DNA of 64,000 bases from positions 62,001-126,000 of the IMG/VR virus record IMGVR_UViG_3300042455_001086, one strand, 5' to 3'. A program made the translations under genes and the position numbers. The notes below the pieces were generated by a model that made no database searches, had not been told where the DNA came from, and saw nothing but the letters and a program-made list of their open reading frames with translations. How positions within the stretch are numbered: the first letter of the stretch is position 1; each line of letters begins with the position of its first letter. Below, in pieces: positions 52,135-62,053 of the stretch.

Positions 52135-52665
52135 TTAAATTTTTTTAAGTATCAAACAACCATCTGAATCTAATTTTGGTTGTTCTTTTGGTTTGTCTTC
52201 AGTATACGATGTTGAAAATCCACCTAATGATTGGTCATAGAAACAGGGTTCCATTTTAATTTCAACATCAATTTCTATTTGTTGTTGGATAGATGAGACA
52301 GCCATATCCATTCTGTCTAACTCTGAAATAGTTTTTCTGTCATAATTTGCAAAATTAAATATAGCTTGTTTAACATCTTCCAAAGTAAACACCTTGTCTT
52401 TATTCAGTTCGATTGCTTTGCTGAATCCGTTTTTAAATCCATATTCAGTATCATCTTGTGCTGTTGGATATATTGAATGGTATTTAGCAAAATCATAAGC
52501 CAACTTATCCAAGTCATAACCATTCTTAATGTCGATACAATTTTTAACCGATAATTTATTTGTAATAGCCATTAGAGGACCACCTTCTGTATCTGCAAAT
52601 AACTTACCATCAACTGTAAGCCAATACGTATCCGAATTTAGTGATTTATATAATTTTCCTTTCAT
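52135..52665 (-). CDS. MKGKL family protein
   Basis: Paralog of 52975 and 60877. Confidence 0.7.
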   Translation of the reverse strand: MKGKLYKSLNSDTYWLTVDGKLFADTEGGPLMAITNKLSVKNCIDIKNGYDLDKLAYDFAKYHSIYPTAQDDTEYGFKNGFSKAIELNKDKVFTLEDVKQAIFNFANYDRKTISELDRMDMAVSSIQQQIEIDVEIKMEPCFYDQSLGGFSTSYTEDKPKEQPKLDSDGCLILKKI

Positions 52666-52974: not shown

Positions 52975-53454
52975 TCATATCTTTTTAAGTATTAAACATC
53001 CATTTGGGTCTAAAAACGGAAATGATGTTTCTTCTTTTGGAAAAATTCTTGTAGAATCTAAGCCATCCCAAATATCATCCATCTCAATCTCAACTTCAAT
53101 TTCTGTTGGTTGTAGTATTGGTTGAGTAAATTCCGCAAAAGTACCTTTATTGTATACACAAAAATCCCAAAGATTTCCCATATCCTCCAAAGTAAAAACC
53201 TTGTCTTTATTCAACTCTATTGCTTTTTTGAAACCCTCTTTAAAACCAATATGACCGTAATGTTCATTATAATCACCATTAACATTAGCATACTCATCAG
53301 CCAACTTCTCAACATAAACTACTCCAAATATCTCATCGCAGTTTTGTTTGGATAGTTTTTTACCTTCAGTCACACCATTTGTAATTGCTACTACTTCTCC
53401 ATTTGTGTCTTTAAGTAAATAATCATTCCCTGTTTTAATTAATTTTCCTTTCAT
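52975..53454 (-). CDS. MKGKL family protein
   Basis: Paralog of 52135; TATCTTTG 4 nt before ATG. Confidence 0.7.
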   Translation of the reverse strand: MKGKLIKTGNDYLLKDTNGEVVAITNGVTEGKKLSKQNCDEIFGVVYVEKLADEYANVNGDYNEHYGHIGFKEGFKKAIELNKDKVFTLEDMGNLWDFCVYNKGTFAEFTQPILQPTEIEVEIEMDDIWDGLDSTRIFPKEETSFPFLDPNGCLILKKI

Positions 53455-53479
53455 AGTTCAAAGATACAAAACTTTTTTT

Positions 53480-53512
53480 AAAAAACAAAATCCCACCTAT
53501 AAAGATGGGATT
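53480..53512 (-). terminator. Intrinsic terminator
   Basis: aatccca/tgggatt stem with A-rich plus-strand flank. Confidence 0.7.
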
Positions 53513-53540
53513 AAATATTTTGAAACCTTGTTGTTTTTTA

Positions 53541-54563
53541 TTAGTCAATAACGATTGCTCTTAACGAGTCAGATGTTAATGAATCTGATTTTATGTAAAT
53601 TAATTTATTTTCGTGTCTCTTTAAGAAATTATCCAAAGTATCATTATAGGTTGACATAAGATATTGTTTACCATTAATCATTATATTAGCATCCATCGTA
53701 TAATGAATTTCAGTTTTGGTTCTAACCATTTGATGACCACATTCAGGACAAAATTTCCAAGATGATTTTTTAATCTTTGTTGAACACTTTGGACATCTAT
53801 CAATCAAATCTTTCTTCTCAAATGGTTTTTGAGATTCTGGTAATATCTTCCAAGTTGATGTTGATACGGTCCAAGAATTGAAATTTTTACTTACGGTTTT
53901 AAATGTTTGATTACTTGAAGATCCCATCTCAACTCTTCCTGTTTCAACTGATTTAGATTTTTTTGCAAAACTTCTTGGTTTTTGGTCGTATTTTCTTTCA
54001 AACTTATTTGATCGTGCGTTGTTACTGAAACTTAATTTACCACTATTATTACTAGTAATATCCACATTTGACGAGTAATTAACATTTGAAGTGTATAAAT
54101 TGTTTCCAATTACATCATTAGTTGATGTAAGATGAGTAACACCAAAACCAGCGGTTCCGGTATTAAAGTAAGTTGGATTCCAATTTAAATTATTGTTTAA
54201 TCTTCCAATAATTATATCTTCTTCCTCATAAAACAAAACTTCAACATCTCCGTTGTTTGCAATTGCGTTTTTTGTTTCATTTGAACCATCAACGGTATAA
54301 GTTTCAAACTTAAATTTGTTTGGAACATCAAGGTATCTTTCAAGAAATACTCTTTCACCTGGACGTAAAACAATTCCACCTCCGTTAATAAATTCTCCGT
54401 TTATTGAGATTTTTGATAGAACGGTTTTTTTAGATCCATTATAGAGTTCAATTTCAAATTCTGAACCGTCTTTTAGATAAACATTCTGACCGAATTGTTT
54501 AATCCTTTGTTTGTTTTTTGTGATATAAGCACACGGCTTATCACTGATTTGATTGTAATACAT
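53541..54563 (-). CDS. Conserved jumbo-phage beta-sandwich protein with zinc ribbon
   Basis: VYLKDGSEFEIELYN..ERVFLERY; CPKC..WKFCPECG. Confidence 0.75.
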   Translation of the reverse strand: MYYNQISDKPCAYITKNKQRIKQFGQNVYLKDGSEFEIELYNGSKKTVLSKISINGEFINGGGIVLRPGERVFLERYLDVPNKFKFETYTVDGSNETKNAIANNGDVEVLFYEEEDIIIGRLNNNLNWNPTYFNTGTAGFGVTHLTSTNDVIGNNLYTSNVNYSSNVDITSNNSGKLSFSNNARSNKFERKYDQKPRSFAKKSKSVETGRVEMGSSSNQTFKTVSKNFNSWTVSTSTWKILPESQKPFEKKDLIDRCPKCSTKIKKSSWKFCPECGHQMVRTKTEIHYTMDANIMINGKQYLMSTYNDTLDNFLKRHENKLIYIKSDSLTSDSLRAIVID

Positions 54564-54663
54564 TTTTCCTTATTTTATTTGTTTATTTTATTGGATGCCG
54601 ATTTGTTGGTTTTACCCAACTCAAATGTTTCAAGAACACTCGGAATCCAGTAACAAGGTTTCA
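54564..54663 (-). promoter_or_regulatory. Structured ~100-nt 5' UTR
   Basis: TGGAT/ATCCA and CCGA/TCGG closing two hairpins; 5' 12 nt complementary to 53521-53532. Confidence 0.5.
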
Positions 54664-54716
54664 GGAATAAATATATTATGATTTTGTTTTTTGTAAATAA
54701 AAAGATGGGTTTTAAT

Positions 54717-55085
54717 TTATCTTGCAATTTCCTTTGCTTGTCGTCTTAATTCTTTTGCTTCAGCTTCGAGTTCTCTGGCTCTACCAAGTAATGAATTTAT
54801 TTCTTCGGCGGTTTCCGGTGTCATATACTCAATGTAATCTGCACTATGACGATTGTGCATTCCTGTTAAATATTTTTTCTTTGGGACTTTATCTATTTTA
54901 ACATATTTCCCATCTTTCATCAAATACATAAACTTACCTTGTACTTTATTTCTTAAAATATCGGCAGACCAAGTTCCGGTATCATCAATATCCGATTTTT
55001 TAATGATGTTAAATTTATGATCTTCAACAACACGATTAACAATTCTTGTCAAATCAGATTCGGTAAGTTTTATGATTTTTTTCAT
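54717..55085 (-). CDS. Leader-bearing protein
   Basis: MKKIIKLTESDLTRIV. Confidence 0.75.
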   Translation of the reverse strand: MKKIIKLTESDLTRIVNRVVEDHKFNIIKKSDIDDTGTWSADILRNKVQGKFMYLMKDGKYVKIDKVPKKKYLTGMHNRHSADYIEYMTPETAEEINSLLGRARELEAEAKELRRQAKEIAR

Positions 55086-55094
55086 AACAATAGA

Positions 55095-55466
55095 TTATTT
55101 AATTATTTTTTGTTCCAGAACACCAATCAATTGTTTTGTATATAAATCAATGACATTTTGATATTCAGAAATCAACTTATTTACATTTTCGGTTAGTTTT
55201 ACTAATTTGGAATGTTCGTCATCAGATAAAAAATAAAATGTTGTTTTCGGTAGATCATCTTTTATATTTTTTACCTTAACTATTTTATAATCACCCTTTT
55301 TATTTAAATCTAAATAATATGGTTTATAGCCTTCTGATATGAGTTTTTGATTCCAAGTGTTTGATATTTGTGATCCATATACAATTCTATCACTTTTGGA
55401 TTCTTTTATTATCTTACCAACAATTCTTGTTAAATCCGATTCAGTAAGTTTTATGATTTTTTTCAT
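55095..55466 (-). CDS. Leader-bearing protein
   Basis: MKKIIKLTESDLTRIV; leader DNA near-identical to that of 54717. Confidence 0.75.
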   Translation of the reverse strand: MKKIIKLTESDLTRIVGKIIKESKSDRIVYGSQISNTWNQKLISEGYKPYYLDLNKKGDYKIVKVKNIKDDLPKTTFYFLSDDEHSKLVKLTENVNKLISEYQNVIDLYTKQLIGVLEQKIIK

Positions 55467-55477
55467 AATAATAAATA

Positions 55478-55849
55478 TCACATTCTTTCAAAATAGAAAA
55501 CAACAGGAATATTTGTCTCCTGGATTAAACCAAAATCTTTTGCCATTCGGTAATTATTATTGTGATTGTTTAATCTTTCTATTTGAAGTCCGATTTCTTT
55601 TCTAAACATCTCAAGATTGAATGTTGATTTCCACCGGTTACATCTCGCACAGCTTGGCATTAAATTTTCAAAATCATCGGTTCCCCTTTCAACACCCCAA
55701 ACTTCAAGGGTTGTTACTTTATCATTCCGGTATAATGGTTTGATGTGGTCCACTTGCATTTGTTTTATGGTAATTTCCTTACCACAATAACCACAATGTC
55801 CATCACATTTATTATAAACTTCTTGTCTGTTTATTTTGGTTTTGGACAT
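55478..55849 (-). CDS. HNH endonuclease
   Basis: CGYCG..QVDHIKP..NLMPSCARCN. Confidence 0.88.
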   Translation of the reverse strand: MSKTKINRQEVYNKCDGHCGYCGKEITIKQMQVDHIKPLYRNDKVTTLEVWGVERGTDDFENLMPSCARCNRWKSTFNLEMFRKEIGLQIERLNNHNNNYRMAKDFGLIQETNIPVVFYFERM

Positions 55850-60880: not shown

Positions 60881-61344
60881 ATTCTTTTAAATATTAAACA
60901 TCCATATTCATCTTTTTTAGGTATATCACCATAATAGACATTACCATTATTTGACAGTGCTGGAACAGTCTCAATCTCAACATCCCATTCTGTTTGTTGT
61001 AGTGATTGTTTAAAAACATCAAAAGTGGGTTCATTTTGCACATGGAAAAATGCTTCTCTTAATTGCCCTTCACTAAACTTTTTATCACCCATCAACTCAA
61101 GTGCTTTTTGGAAACCTTTTTTAAAAGCAAGTTCTCTAATAAGTGCTTCTTCATCATTCCATACTTCACAAATAGGATATTCTATTTTAGCCAACTCATC
61201 CAAATCATAACCAAGTTCAATTACTTTACAGTTTTTAAGTGATAACGATAATCCTTCTTTCTTTAATGATGTTGAAGCTATAACAACCCCATTATCATCT
61301 TCAAGAATATAATTTACATCTGTTTTAATTAATTTCCCCTTCAT
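60877..61344 (-). CDS. MKGKL family protein
   Basis: Paralog of 52135 and 52975. Confidence 0.7.
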   Translation of the reverse strand: MKGKLIKTDVNYILEDDNGVVIASTSLKKEGLSLSLKNCKVIELGYDLDELAKIEYPICEVWNDEEALIRELAFKKGFQKALELMGDKKFSEGQLREAFFHVQNEPTFDVFKQSLQQTEWDVEIETVPALSNNGNVYYGDIPKKDEYGCLIFKRI

Positions 61345-61376
61345 ACCTCAAAATTAATAATATTATTTTAAAAAAC

Positions 61377-61402
61377 AAATCCCCACTCTAAAGTGAGGAT
61401 TT
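61377..61402 (-). terminator. Intrinsic terminator
   Basis: aaatcc.cac/gtg.ggattt stem. Confidence 0.65.
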
Positions 61403-61406
61403 AATT

Positions 61407-61658
61407 TTATTTCTTTAGTTCTTCAACCATCTTTATATTAAGTGTTGGTGTCCTTAAAACATCATCGGTGCAATTCGTAATTGTTGTCATTCCATTATGG
61501 TATGATCTAACATCCTTTGCTTCCACTTGTGTTCCGTCATTAAACCTTACCAATTTATCACAGACATCACCTTTTTTAAATGCTAGGTATAAAATTCCAC
61601 CATAAATTAACCCACTTAAAATAATCACAAAGAATAGTGTTCCAAAATTTCTTATCAT
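61407..61658 (-). CDS. Membrane-anchored small protein
   Basis: N-terminal TM helix. Confidence 0.6.
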   Translation of the reverse strand: MIRNFGTLFFVIILSGLIYGGILYLAFKKGDVCDKLVRFNDGTQVEAKDVRSYHNGMTTITNCTDDVLRTPTLNIKMVEELKK

Positions 61659-61672
61659 AATTTTATTTTTTA

Positions 61673-62053
61673 CTAATTTATAAAGACACAATCACTGAAA
61701 TCATACAAATGATTACCCCTTGTTGATCTAACTTGTAAGTAATATTTATAACCAAATAACTCAAACGATTTTTGGTCTTCACCATCCTTCAGTGGTTTAA
61801 TTGGTAATTGAAGGTTTGTTTCAATTCCGTGAATAACTTCAATATTTTTAACAACATCAGTCCAGGTTGAAAGTCCGTATTTACCCTTATATCTAAATTC
61901 CTTTCCAACCAATTGTTTTAAATCAAAAGTTGATGTGGTTTCTTCAACTTCCGGTGATAATGGATTTCTTTCTCCGGTTAATTCTTCATAATACGGATTA
62001 AGTTCTCCGGTGTATGGATCGTGTGTTGGTATTTTATTTGCCGAAGTTTCCAT
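61673..62053 (-). CDS. Hypothetical protein
   Basis: HDPYTGELNPYYEELTGERNPL. Confidence 0.65.
   Translation of the reverse strand: METSANKIPTHDPYTGELNPYYEELTGERNPLSPEVEETTSTFDLKQLVGKEFRYKGKYGLSTWTDVVKNIEVIHGIETNLQLPIKPLKDGEDQKSFELFGYKYYLQVRSTRGNHLYDFSDCVFIN

Follow-up and report, generated by a model that had tools for sequence, protein, structure and literature searches.

A gene of unknown function in a 257-kb lake phage is predicted to be transcribed as an mRNA whose first ~12 bases pair with bases located just after its own stop codon. This pairing persists across ten sequence-distinct versions in about a hundred related phages, so that it is a real and apparently undescribed regulatory RNA design, although how it works was not tested. 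The locus was examined in a window of 64,000 nucleotides (positions 62,001 to 126,000 of IMG/VR record IMGVR_UViG_3300042455_001086), to which all coordinates refer. On the minus strand, 54663-54652 reads TGAAACCTTGTT and 53532-53521 reads AACAAGGTTTCA; the two are exact reverse complements with 1119 nt between them, and at 0 mismatches the 12-mer occurs only at these two places in the window. The gene appears as a self-contained expression cassette, with promoter, structured leader, ORF and terminator, the parts of which are given in the table below.

Features of the cassette in the 64,000-nt window (P0, helix between the two transcript ends; P1 to P3, leader stems)
Feature	Position	Strand	Sequence or description
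Upstream terminator remnant	54698..54716	-	AUUAAAACCCAUCUUUUUA; direct repeat of the 5' half of the downstream terminator (84% identical, spacing 1200)
-35-like hexamer	54692..54697	-	TTTACA, of the cassette's own promoter-like site; 16-nt spacer to the -10-like hexamer
-10-like hexamer	54670..54675	-	TATATT; overlaps TATTTAT at 54673-54667, which lies 3 nt before the 5' arm
Predicted transcription start	about 54664-54662	-	inferred from spacing only
P0 5' arm	54652..54663	-	UGAAACCUUGUU; core CCUUGUU (54658-54652) also complementary to AAUAAGG
Three-way-junction leader	54592..54649	-	P1, 54649-54645 and 54643-54640 paired with 54601-54598 and 54596-54592; P2 hairpin, 54639-54625; J2/3, UUGA at 54624-54621; P3 hairpin, 54620-54605
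A-rich unstructured linker	54564..54591	-	holds the start-proximal element AAUAAGG (54574-54568), 5 nt upstream of the AUG
ORF	53541..54563	-	340 aa, stop codon at 53543-53541; predicted Ig-like beta-sandwich (about 6-120 plus 200-245), low-complexity linker, C4 zinc ribbon (C257, C260, C272, C275), optional C-terminal domain (about 280-340)
Spacer	53533..53540	-	8 nt, A-rich, between stop codon and 3' arm
P0 3' arm	53521..53532	-	AACAAGGUUUCA
Intrinsic terminator	53480..53512	-	stem AAUCCCA/UGGGAUU followed by UUGUUUUUU; begins 8 nt after the 3' arm

The preliminary description had reported this 12-bp inverted repeat as joining the predicted ends of one transcript, with the 5' arm 3 nt after a TATTTAT element, its complement between the stop codon and the terminator hairpin, and a leader of ~100 nt folding through TGGAT/ATCCA, CCGA/TCGG, GTGTT/AACAT and GTTGG/CCAAC. 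This observation was confirmed, and the four leader stems are exactly those found in both the minimum-free-energy fold and the RNAalifold consensus. However, within this genome alone the repeat is not beyond chance, since among 324 crude genes, gene-flanking inverted repeats of 12 nt or more occur about as often as in mismatched controls (about 1%), the other cases being A/T low-complexity, and significance comes from the homologous loci. The accompanying statement that most genes of this phage have almost no UTR is roughly right but not absolute, as the median intergenic gap is 25 nt and 48 of 323 gaps exceed 150 nt.

Conservation or covariation of the 12-mer pair and of the leader stems in homologous loci had been set out in advance as the condition on which the interpretation would stand or fall, and both were found. 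In position-restricted windows, 68% of 111 distinct homologous loci carry a perfect run of 12 nt or more, against 0.14% of shuffles. Ten sequence-distinct arm pairs stay complementary, namely GAAACCUUGUU, GACCUUGUGGUU, AUAUAACCUUGUGA, GCCUCGUGUGGC, GAGCCUCGCUCU, GGAACCUCACGUU, UUGAUGAUUAAC, UUUACGUUAACUCAA, UCUCACUUUGUU and UUUAUAGCUGUUCG. The resulting helix of 12-16 bp, here called P0, is present in the minimum-free-energy fold of the whole 930-1230-nt transcript in all ten lineages, with a mean pair probability of 0.89-1.00; in the phage studied here, 12/12 pairs are formed in the 1189-nt transcript with a mean probability of 0.94. In an alignment of whole mRNAs intended for RNAalifold analysis of P0, the 3' arms split into two alignment blocks because the C-terminal domain is optional, and the helix was therefore anchored in scripts instead. 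A comparison of sense with antisense RNAduplex energies was uninformative, because the flanking terminators pair with each other. A subgroup of homologues (L069-type) and the homologues of Lak megaphages, the latter read through their in-frame TAG, lack P0, which is therefore dispensable for the protein family. The central reading of the preliminary description, one transcript whose ends are joined by a helix together with a multi-stem leader, is thus supported.

The position of the arms is also conserved. TTTACA (or TTGACA/TTCACA), followed by 16-18 nt and TATA(T/A)TTAT, recurs upstream of the 5' arm in most of about 90 distinct homologous loci, and the -10-like element ends 2-6 nt before the first paired base. 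The perfect run of the 3' arm starts 8-15 nt after the stop codon and never closer, with one outlier at 29, and the spacing is never below 7 unpaired nt whether the C-terminal domain is gained or lost. A G+C-rich hairpin plus T-run follows the 3' arm within 0-12 nt in nearly all homologous loci. The transcript ends are inferred, as no transcription-start data were available and the only true metatranscriptome among the RNA runs examined contained short Logan contigs over 54438-54649 without end information.

The leader forms a three-way junction with a fold energy of -21 kcal/mol (z = -2.4). In the homologues, 15 of 19 pairs show compensatory changes and 98.0% of cells are paired, against 80.8% in shuffles and 34-45% when partners are slid, and 0/500 shuffles reach the observed values. 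A model of the leader gives a single hit in the 257-kb genome (114 bits), and a genome-wide scan for the same architecture around other genes of this phage found only chance-level A/T-rich repeats. The comparison with Rfam that had been suggested beforehand (Rfam 15, at gathering scores and at E up to 10) gave no hit in the window at the gathering score, and at the relaxed threshold only chance-level hits on the terminator and none on the leader or arms, while a blastn search of the locus against 50,697 phage records returned no match. A hammerhead-like reading of the junction was considered by eye and rejected, since the junction sequences do not fit the catalytic core and one required G is A in half of the sequences.

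A further relationship, not noticed in the preliminary description, is that the core of the 5' arm is also complementary to the sequence just upstream of the start codon. AUAAGG is nearly invariant in the main clade, and the part of the 5' arm that is sequence-invariant in this clade (CCUUGU) is exactly the part shared by both partners, whereas the flanking P0 positions covary freely. The leader folded alone pairs CCUUGUU with AAUAAGG, and such pairing occurs in 64 of 80 distinct leaders, with a mean of 4.6 bp against 1.0 bp for shuffled arms; adding the 3' UTR moves the arm wholly into P0. Lineages with replaced arms also changed the start-proximal element to match (ACGAGA, GGAGG, AGUUAAU, AGAGA). 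In an arm-by-RBS energy matrix over 9 lineages, the diagonal averages -5.5 and the off-diagonal -3.1 kcal/mol (permutation p about 1e-4, or 6e-4 without one close relative). However, this covariation test rests on only 9 lineages, and the complementarity is weak or absent in some of the lineages examined (those designated L016, L186, L092 and L037). Shine-Dalgarno (SD) motifs are otherwise absent from the genes of this genome, and AAGGA at -18..-4 is found in 0.3% of them, which is this gene only. Ribosomes of Bacteroidia, the likely host class, do not recognise SD sequences (PMC7797042, PMC9976891), so AUAAGG is unlikely to be conserved simply as an SD.

These observations are best explained, with moderate confidence overall, by a closed-loop mRNA. 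In this model, the first 12-15 nt pair with a segment 8-15 nt past the stop codon, immediately before the terminator hairpin, and the resulting P0 sits next to the three-way junction. The same 5' arm could instead pair, more weakly, with the element 4-14 nt upstream of the AUG, behaving as an anti-RBS (a mask of the ribosome-binding site) with the 3' arm as its competitor. The start site could be masked while the transcript is incomplete or has lost its 3' end, and once the 3' arm is made the stronger P0 would form, leaving the A-rich start region open and the 5' terminus buried in a helix. The free UGAAA at the very 5' end could act as a toehold for this exchange, and the 7 or more unpaired nt after the stop codon would let terminating ribosomes finish without opening P0. 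The analysis itself demonstrates that the structures exist, covary and sit at fixed positions, and we are highly confident that P0 and the leader are selected RNA structures; the transcript ends, the switch and any effect on translation or decay are inferred, and the gating of translation by transcript completion or integrity is held only tentatively. No structure-probing or expression data exist, and the effect of the pairing on mRNA decay or translation was not measured. When ORF sequence is included in equilibrium folds, the arm:RBS pairing is unstable, ranging from 0 to 6 expected bp depending on transcript length, and the predicted gain in start-site accessibility on adding the 3' arm is modest (0.36 to 0.22 here, and none in some lineages). 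A wider reading, possible but tentative, is a bacterial-type counterpart of the eukaryotic closed-loop check, in which the mRNA is translated only when its own 3' end is present and intact. The 3' arm would be the only sequence able to pull the 5'-terminal anti-RBS off the start region, the host's ribosomes would ignore SD sequences and depend on an open, A-rich start site, and the leader would be a new RNA class positioning the two competing helices.

An alternative, considered unlikely, is that P0 is a pure stability clamp, burying the 5' end and/or a cleavage site in the leader and protecting the mRNA from 5'-end-dependent or endonucleolytic decay. The AUAAGG element would then be unrelated to the arm, being either a true SD used by a subset of ribosomes or just part of the A-rich start region. 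The start of the 5' arm at the predicted transcription start and the small change in start-site accessibility in folds including the ORF are in line with this view, as is the Bacillus subtilis hbs mRNA, in which a 14-bp 5'/3'-UTR helix of similar length and geometry modulates RNase Y cleavage in a structured leader (Braun, Durand and Condon 2017, PMC5737220). However, a clamp does not explain why the arm core is invariant while its flanks covary, nor why the start-proximal element changes together with the arm, and a simple local 5' hairpin would protect the 5' end more cheaply. In both systems the helix joins a highly structured leader to the 3' UTR of the same monocistronic mRNA, is thought to control access of RNases and links stability to translation initiation. 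The hbs helix differs in overlapping an RNase Y site inside the leader rather than the extreme 5' end, in using a strong SD in an SD-using host, in having no described competing arm:RBS pairing, and in belonging to a cellular gene known from one species; the phage helix is seen in about a hundred genomes, but without any experiment.

Two Staphylococcus aureus RNAs are also comparable. In icaR mRNA (Ruiz de los Mozos et al. 2013, PMC3868564; reviewed in PMC7821165), pairing of the 3' UTR with the 5' UTR of one mRNA likewise sets ribosome-binding-site accessibility and involves a pyrimidine-rich anti-RBS motif. However, in icaR the anti-RBS (UCCCC) lies in the 3' UTR, and pairing represses translation and creates an RNase III site, whereas here the anti-RBS-like sequence is the 5' arm and the 3' arm would relieve masking, which is the opposite logic. 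Repression of the icaR type was not supported, as the 3' arm pairs with the 5'-terminal arm and resembles the start-proximal element rather than complementing it. In RNAIII, long-range pairing of the 5' and 3' ends delays hld translation (PMC7821165), a proposed effect on timing that is similar, but deleting the 3' end abolishes the delay, so the 3' end inhibits; RNAIII is chiefly a regulatory RNA, and its helix is about 7 bp. Pyrimidine-rich anti-SD-like sequences far from the RBS in the same mRNA can pair with it, block initiation and promote decay (Gill et al. 2025 preprint, PMC12697547), which gives a basis for the 5' arm acting as an anti-RBS, although those are synthetic or avoided sequences in B. 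subtilis genes, and the element described here is conserved and has a dedicated competitor at the 3' end. Only hbs, icaR and RNAIII are described as 5'/3'-UTR pairings of bacterial mRNAs in the review consulted (PMC7821165), and literature searches found none for a DNA phage. The phage mRNA shares with this group complementary segments in the 5' and 3' UTRs of one transcription unit, which lie inside the promoter and terminator and are predicted to pair in the full-length RNA, and a pairing maintained by selection, whereas only folding predictions are available on its effect on decay or translation. In the present case the evidence comes from evolution, as loci from 30-kb phages to genomes above 600 kb keep the helix through ten wholesale sequence replacements. 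If the competing arm:RBS pairing is real, it is a simple way to couple translation to transcript completion or integrity, which would be a general design principle and a compact part for synthetic biology in Bacteroidia, where SD-based tools fail.

The preliminary description had listed stability, RNase III processing, circularisation and translational autoregulation by the zinc-ribbon product as possible functions, and these remain untested, no data bearing on circularisation. A processing stalk, in which cleavage would trim both ends of the mRNA, is considered very unlikely. P0 encloses the whole ORF in the way that processing stems enclose 16S or 23S rRNA, and P0 and P1 (9-10 bp) are separated by only 1-2 nt on the 5' strand. 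However, P0 alone is shorter than the roughly two helical turns typical of RNase III substrates, and about 22 bp is reached only if P0 is stacked on P1, then with a break on the 3' strand, so that the length criterion leaves the matter undecided; cleavage was not assayed, and it would remove the terminator hairpin that protects the 3' end. The helices of rRNA and T7-type processing stalks and the panhandles of RNA viruses also close a long RNA into a loop, but they are longer and are RNase III substrates, or serve as replication promoters, and nothing here indicates cleavage or replication.

An action of the repeat at the DNA level, either as the ends of an invertible segment or a small transposon or as two inverted copies of a protein-binding site co-evolving with that protein, is also very unlikely. 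The invertible or mobile unit, which the preliminary description had itself ranked as less likely, found no support. Inverted repeats that change in concert are also expected for recombination sites or paired operators, and the cassette sits among very variable neighbours (97 clusters among 202 flanking ORFs). G.U against A.C counts inside P0 do not discriminate, with two internal G.U contexts against one A.C, too sparse to prove strand-specific selection. However, the ORF has the same orientation relative to promoter and terminator in all 170 loci, and no strand-change joints appear in four DNA metagenomes, although these are contigs only and can miss rare forms; 'skip' joints found there come from relatives that lack the C-terminal domain. 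The neighbours are an HNH endonuclease and unknown proteins, with no recombinase, and there is no recombinase or transposase in the unit. The leader motif and the 12-mer are single-copy, homology runs beyond the arms into promoter and terminators, so the arms are not the unit's borders, and the flanking direct repeat is a terminator remnant. A DNA model predicts neither the arm:RBS covariation nor the fixed spacing to the stop codon.

The leader and P0 could also form a binding platform for a protein, such as the gene's own zinc-ribbon product (autoregulation), a host factor or a ribosomal component, with P0 merely fixing the geometry. This reading is improbable, although compatible with the closed-loop model rather than exclusive of it. 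J2/3 (UUGAGU) and the P3 stem (GUUGG/CCAAC) are nearly invariant in sequence, not only in pairing, which is typical of a recognition site, and the product has a C4 zinc ribbon, the only feature with Pfam hits. However, nothing links the product to the RNA, and its AF2 model (pLDDT 78.5) shows a generic Ig-like beta-sandwich with no recognisable RNA-binding fold beyond the zinc ribbon. Fold searches (PDB Foldseek, VIA-align wide, AFDB clusters and ESM Atlas) returned only generic Ig-like sandwiches and phage-only clusters of hypothetical proteins. The 2369 homologues found, none with an informative name, mark a very abundant phage protein family of unknown function whose expression is unusually tightly engineered. 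At the upstream border of the cassette, where this phage retains only a terminator remnant, relatives have an intact terminator, often similar to their downstream one.

The window, bases 62001-126000 of a 257,166-bp IMG/VR phage record with inverted terminal repeats, has about 29% G+C and occurs in lake-water metagenomes. Genes of this phage lack Shine-Dalgarno (SD) motifs, as AGGA, GGAG and AAGG at positions -18 to -4 were found in 1-2.5% of genes, which is below background. One close homologue of the gene studied here is filed under a Bacteroidota MAG, whereas more distant homologues sit in Prevotella Lak megaphages. The genome also holds, outside the window (locus L187), a 64-aa open frame matching ribosomal protein bS21 (PF01165, 26.1 bits, just under the 27-bit cut-off), as has been described for large freshwater phages of Bacteroidetes (PMC9723584). 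A Bacteroidota host is therefore likely, although this is inferred and not shown. In Flavobacterium, only ribosomes lacking bS21 read SD sequences (PMC9976891), which might bear on the unique AAGGA located upstream of the gene studied.

The 12-nt inverted repeat reported in the preliminary description was confirmed, as its two arms are exact complements separated by 1119 nt and represent the only perfect copies in the window. Between them lies a single ORF, with a promoter-like site upstream of the 5' arm and a hairpin followed by a T-run downstream of the 3' arm. The leader stems proposed in the same description are exactly those of the minimum-free-energy fold. Taken alone, however, the repeat is not remarkable, since among 324 crudely predicted genes of this phage gene-flanking repeats of 12 nt or more are about as frequent as in mismatched controls. 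The coordinates of these and other features are collected in the table below.

Coordinates of the cassette, its parts and its surroundings (window positions unless another sequence is named)
Feature	Coordinates	Strand	Description
Promoter-like element, distal	54697-54692	minus	TTTACA, followed by a 16-nt spacer
Promoter-like element, proximal	54675-54670	minus	TATATT
5' arm	54663-54652	minus	TGAAACCTTGTT
5' arm segment able to pair near the AUG	54658-54652	minus	CCUUGUU
Segment complementary to 16S rRNA	54650-54659	minus	ACCTTGTTAC
Start-proximal element	54574-54568	minus	AAUAAGG, 5 nt before the AUG
ORF	54563-53541	minus	340 aa
Optional C-terminal domain	53541-53730		residues about 280-340 of the product
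3' arm	53532-53521	minus	AACAAGGTTTCA
Hairpin plus T-run	53512-53480	minus	terminator
Direct repeat D3 and inverted repeat I2	54698-54716 and 53498-53516; 54680-54697 and 53475-53492		truncated upstream terminator resembling the downstream one
Metatranscriptome contigs	54438-54649		leader and first ~125 nt of the ORF
Small ORFs with a shared N-terminal motif	54717-55085, 55095-55481 and about 61298-61408		
Paralogous small ORFs	52135-52665 and 52975-53454		
HNH endonuclease gene	55478-55849	minus	two genes upstream of the cassette
bS21-like open frame	G000:C1:13497-13643 (outside the window; locus L187)		64 aa
Locus region with the homing endonuclease insertion	L018:1880-3900		275 aa, GIY-YIG/NUMOD

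Conservation or covariation of the two arms and of the leader stems in homologous loci had been named at the outset as the point on which the reading of a closed transcript would stand or fall, and this comparison was carried out. Searches with the protein and with an alignment of it retrieved 177 homologous loci from viral and metagenome contigs, and six more were obtained from GenBank phage records. Of these, 157 had a complete ORF with flanks, giving 111 distinct flank pairs. In windows restricted to -135 to -60 before the AUG and +1 to +40 after the stop, 68% of loci have a perfect complementary run of 12 nt or more, against 0.14% of shuffles. The positions of this long-range helix, termed P0, are fixed: the 5' arm starts about 100-105 nt before the AUG and 2-6 nt after a TATA(T/A)TTAT element, and the 3' arm starts 8-15 nt after the stop and ends 0-12 nt before a terminator. 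The sequence, on the other hand, is not fixed. Besides the majority GAAACCUUGUU, nine other versions were found, each with its exact partner, namely GACCUUGUGGUU (with sense-strand G.U pairs), AUAUAACCUUGUGA, GCCUCGUGUGGC, GAGCCUCGCUCU, GGAACCUCACGUU, UUGAUGAUUAAC, UUUACGUUAACUCAA, UCUCACUUUGUU (from a 462-kb phage) and UUUAUAGCUGUUCG (from a 642-kb phage). In folds of the complete 930-1230-nt transcripts, P0 is part of the minimum-free-energy structure in all ten lineages, with a mean pair probability of 0.89-1.00. The interpretation first put forward, in which a helix joins the two ends of one transcript next to a multi-stem leader, is thus supported.

The 5' arm plus the two following bases is the exact complement of the universal 16S rRNA segment GUAACAAGGU (the 1492R primer site), and the 3' arm therefore copies that rRNA segment; this match was not checked against a 16S sequence, is not kept in lineages with other arms and is probably a coincidence. 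The spacing of P0 to the stop codon is kept whether or not the optional C-terminal domain is present. Many homologues stop right after the zinc ribbon, and DNA contigs of relatives skip 179-193 nt in this region, but the 3' arm always follows whichever stop codon is used. In one homologous locus (L018, and probably also L099), a GIY-YIG/NUMOD homing endonuclease gene (275 aa, Pfam E = 1.8e-13) has been inserted after codon 33 of a truncated first copy of the gene's 5' end, and a complete gene copy follows it. The promoter, the 5' arm (TCGATGATTAAC) and the leader lie upstream of this insertion, while the 3' arm lies after the gene, so that P0 would span about 2 kb. P0 is not found in all homologues. 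A subgroup of 310-323 aa (loci L069, L073, L074, L076, L078, L079, L081 and L083) keeps a weak version of the leader (35-37 bits) but has no P0, and a run of 10-13 A precedes its terminator. The CACGGAC of this leader is complementary, with one bulge, to GUCCCGUG in the terminator stem, which may represent a different 5'-3' contact, although there is too little variation to test it. The homologues of the Prevotella Lak megaphages (loci L181 and L185, about 35% identity) show no P0-type flanking complementarity either, and contain 1-3 in-frame TAG codons inside the conserved ORF, which points to TAG being read as sense there.

An alignment of 34 distinct leaders gave a three-way junction in which stem P1 closes hairpins P2 and P3, with compensatory changes in 15 of 19 pairs. 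A covariance model built from this alignment detected 90 of the 100 loci searched. On the resulting alignment, 98.0% of cells are standard pairs, against 80.8% in column shuffles and 34-45% when partners are slid by 1-3 columns, and none of 500 shuffles reached the observed covariation. This alignment is fitted to the model, which favours it, but the margin is large. The junction segment J2/3 (UUGAGU) and P3 (GUUGG/CCAAC) are nearly invariant in sequence. The model hits only this one place in the 257-kb genome, and a search of Rfam 15 returned nothing like it. In the one true metatranscriptome that contains this sequence (X19), the only contigs cover the leader and the beginning of the ORF; contigs of two runs (X19 and X20) end at 54649/54650, 2-3 nt short of the inner end of the 5' arm, but these data are too thin to interpret.

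The 5' arm also has a second potential partner. Folded alone, the leader pairs CCUUGUU with the start-proximal AAUAAGG, and the same was observed in 64 of 80 distinct leaders, with a mean of 4.6 expected bp against 1.0 with shuffled arms, whereas adding the 3' UTR moves the arm completely into P0. Three observations make this more than a folding artefact. First, AAGGA upstream of a start codon occurs in this genome only at this gene, and Bacteroidia ribosomes do not use SD sequences (PMC7797042, PMC9976891). Second, within the main clade the P0 positions shared with the AUAAGG pairing are sequence-invariant, while the P0 positions on either side covary freely, as a three-partner constraint predicts. 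Third, lineages that replaced the arm also replaced the start-proximal element by a matching one (CCUCGUG/ACGAGA, CCUC/GGAGG, GUUAACU/AGUUAAU and UCUC/AGAGA). There are weak points, since some lineages (L016, L186, L092 and L037) show little complementarity and, with ORF sequence included, equilibrium folds keep the arm:RBS helix only intermittently. For the third observation, in an arm-by-RBS energy matrix built over nine lineages, cognate pairs average -5.5 kcal/mol and non-cognate pairs -3.1 kcal/mol, with a permutation p of about 1e-4, or 6e-4 without one close relative.

We take it as demonstrated by the analysis that P0 and the three-way junction are selected structures on the sense strand of one transcription unit, whereas the remainder of the proposed mechanism is inferred. 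In this view, the transcript begins at about 54664-54662 and ends at the terminator, and the 5' arm can mask the start region until the 3' arm is transcribed, or again after 3' decay, with the free UGAAA potentially acting as a toehold for the exchange. The closed form would expose the A-rich start region and hide the 5' end. The 7 or more unpaired nt after the stop fit a helix placed just outside the footprint of a terminating ribosome, and P0 could therefore persist during translation. A plain stability clamp, such as that of hbs (PMC5737220), is the main alternative and is not exclusive. Long-range anti-SD-like sequences are known to repress in the way suggested here for the 5' arm (PMC12697547).

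At the DNA level, the short invertible or mobile unit that the preliminary description had considered less likely found no support. All loci have one orientation relative to promoter and terminator, and four DNA metagenomes show no strand-change joint, though these are contigs and rare forms could be missed. The unit has no recombinase or transposase, it is single-copy, and homology extends beyond the arms into the promoter and the flanking terminators. Counts of internal G.U against A.C pairs are too few to add to this. The direct and inverted repeats that flank the cassette (D3 and I2) are a truncated upstream terminator resembling the downstream one; in relatives both terminators are intact and often similar to each other, and the cassette is therefore bracketed by like terminators, which could serve recombination. 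The neighbours are highly variable, with 97 clusters among 202 flanking ORFs, and the cassette does move among phage genomes, but as a promoter-to-terminator module.

The encoded protein is of unknown function. Pfam recognises only a zinc ribbon, and 2369 homologues were found without informative names. An AlphaFold model (pLDDT 78.5) shows four parts, namely a predicted Ig-like beta-sandwich built from residues about 6-120 and 200-245, a disordered N/S/T-rich linker, a C4 zinc ribbon, and a small C-terminal domain. Nothing supports or excludes the autoregulation by the zinc-ribbon product that had been suggested initially. Fold searches returned generic sandwiches and phage-only clusters of hypothetical proteins.

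The closest known cases are the 5'/3'-UTR pairings of hbs, icaR and RNAIII (PMC5737220, PMC3868564, PMC7821165), with which the present case shares the principle. It differs in that it is encoded by a phage, engages the extreme 5' end, and abuts a new structured leader. It also appears to work by the opposite logic to icaR, as here the 3' arm would relieve masking, whereas in icaR the 3' UTR masks the RBS. Finally, it has comparative support from ten compensating arm versions, but no experimental support. No earlier description was found in the literature. The structural claim is strong and immediately testable, and the functional model would be conceptually new if it is confirmed.

The surroundings of the cassette include an HNH endonuclease gene (Pfam HNH E = 1.6e-11; PHROG 2118 E = 1e-42). 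Neighbouring small ORFs share the N-terminal motif MKKIIKLTESDLTRIV, a third copy of which lies about 6.5 kb away (75% DNA identity). Likewise, two other small ORFs are paralogues, with MKGKL... at the start and GCLILKKI at the end, and both groups represent families of duplicated small genes of unknown function.
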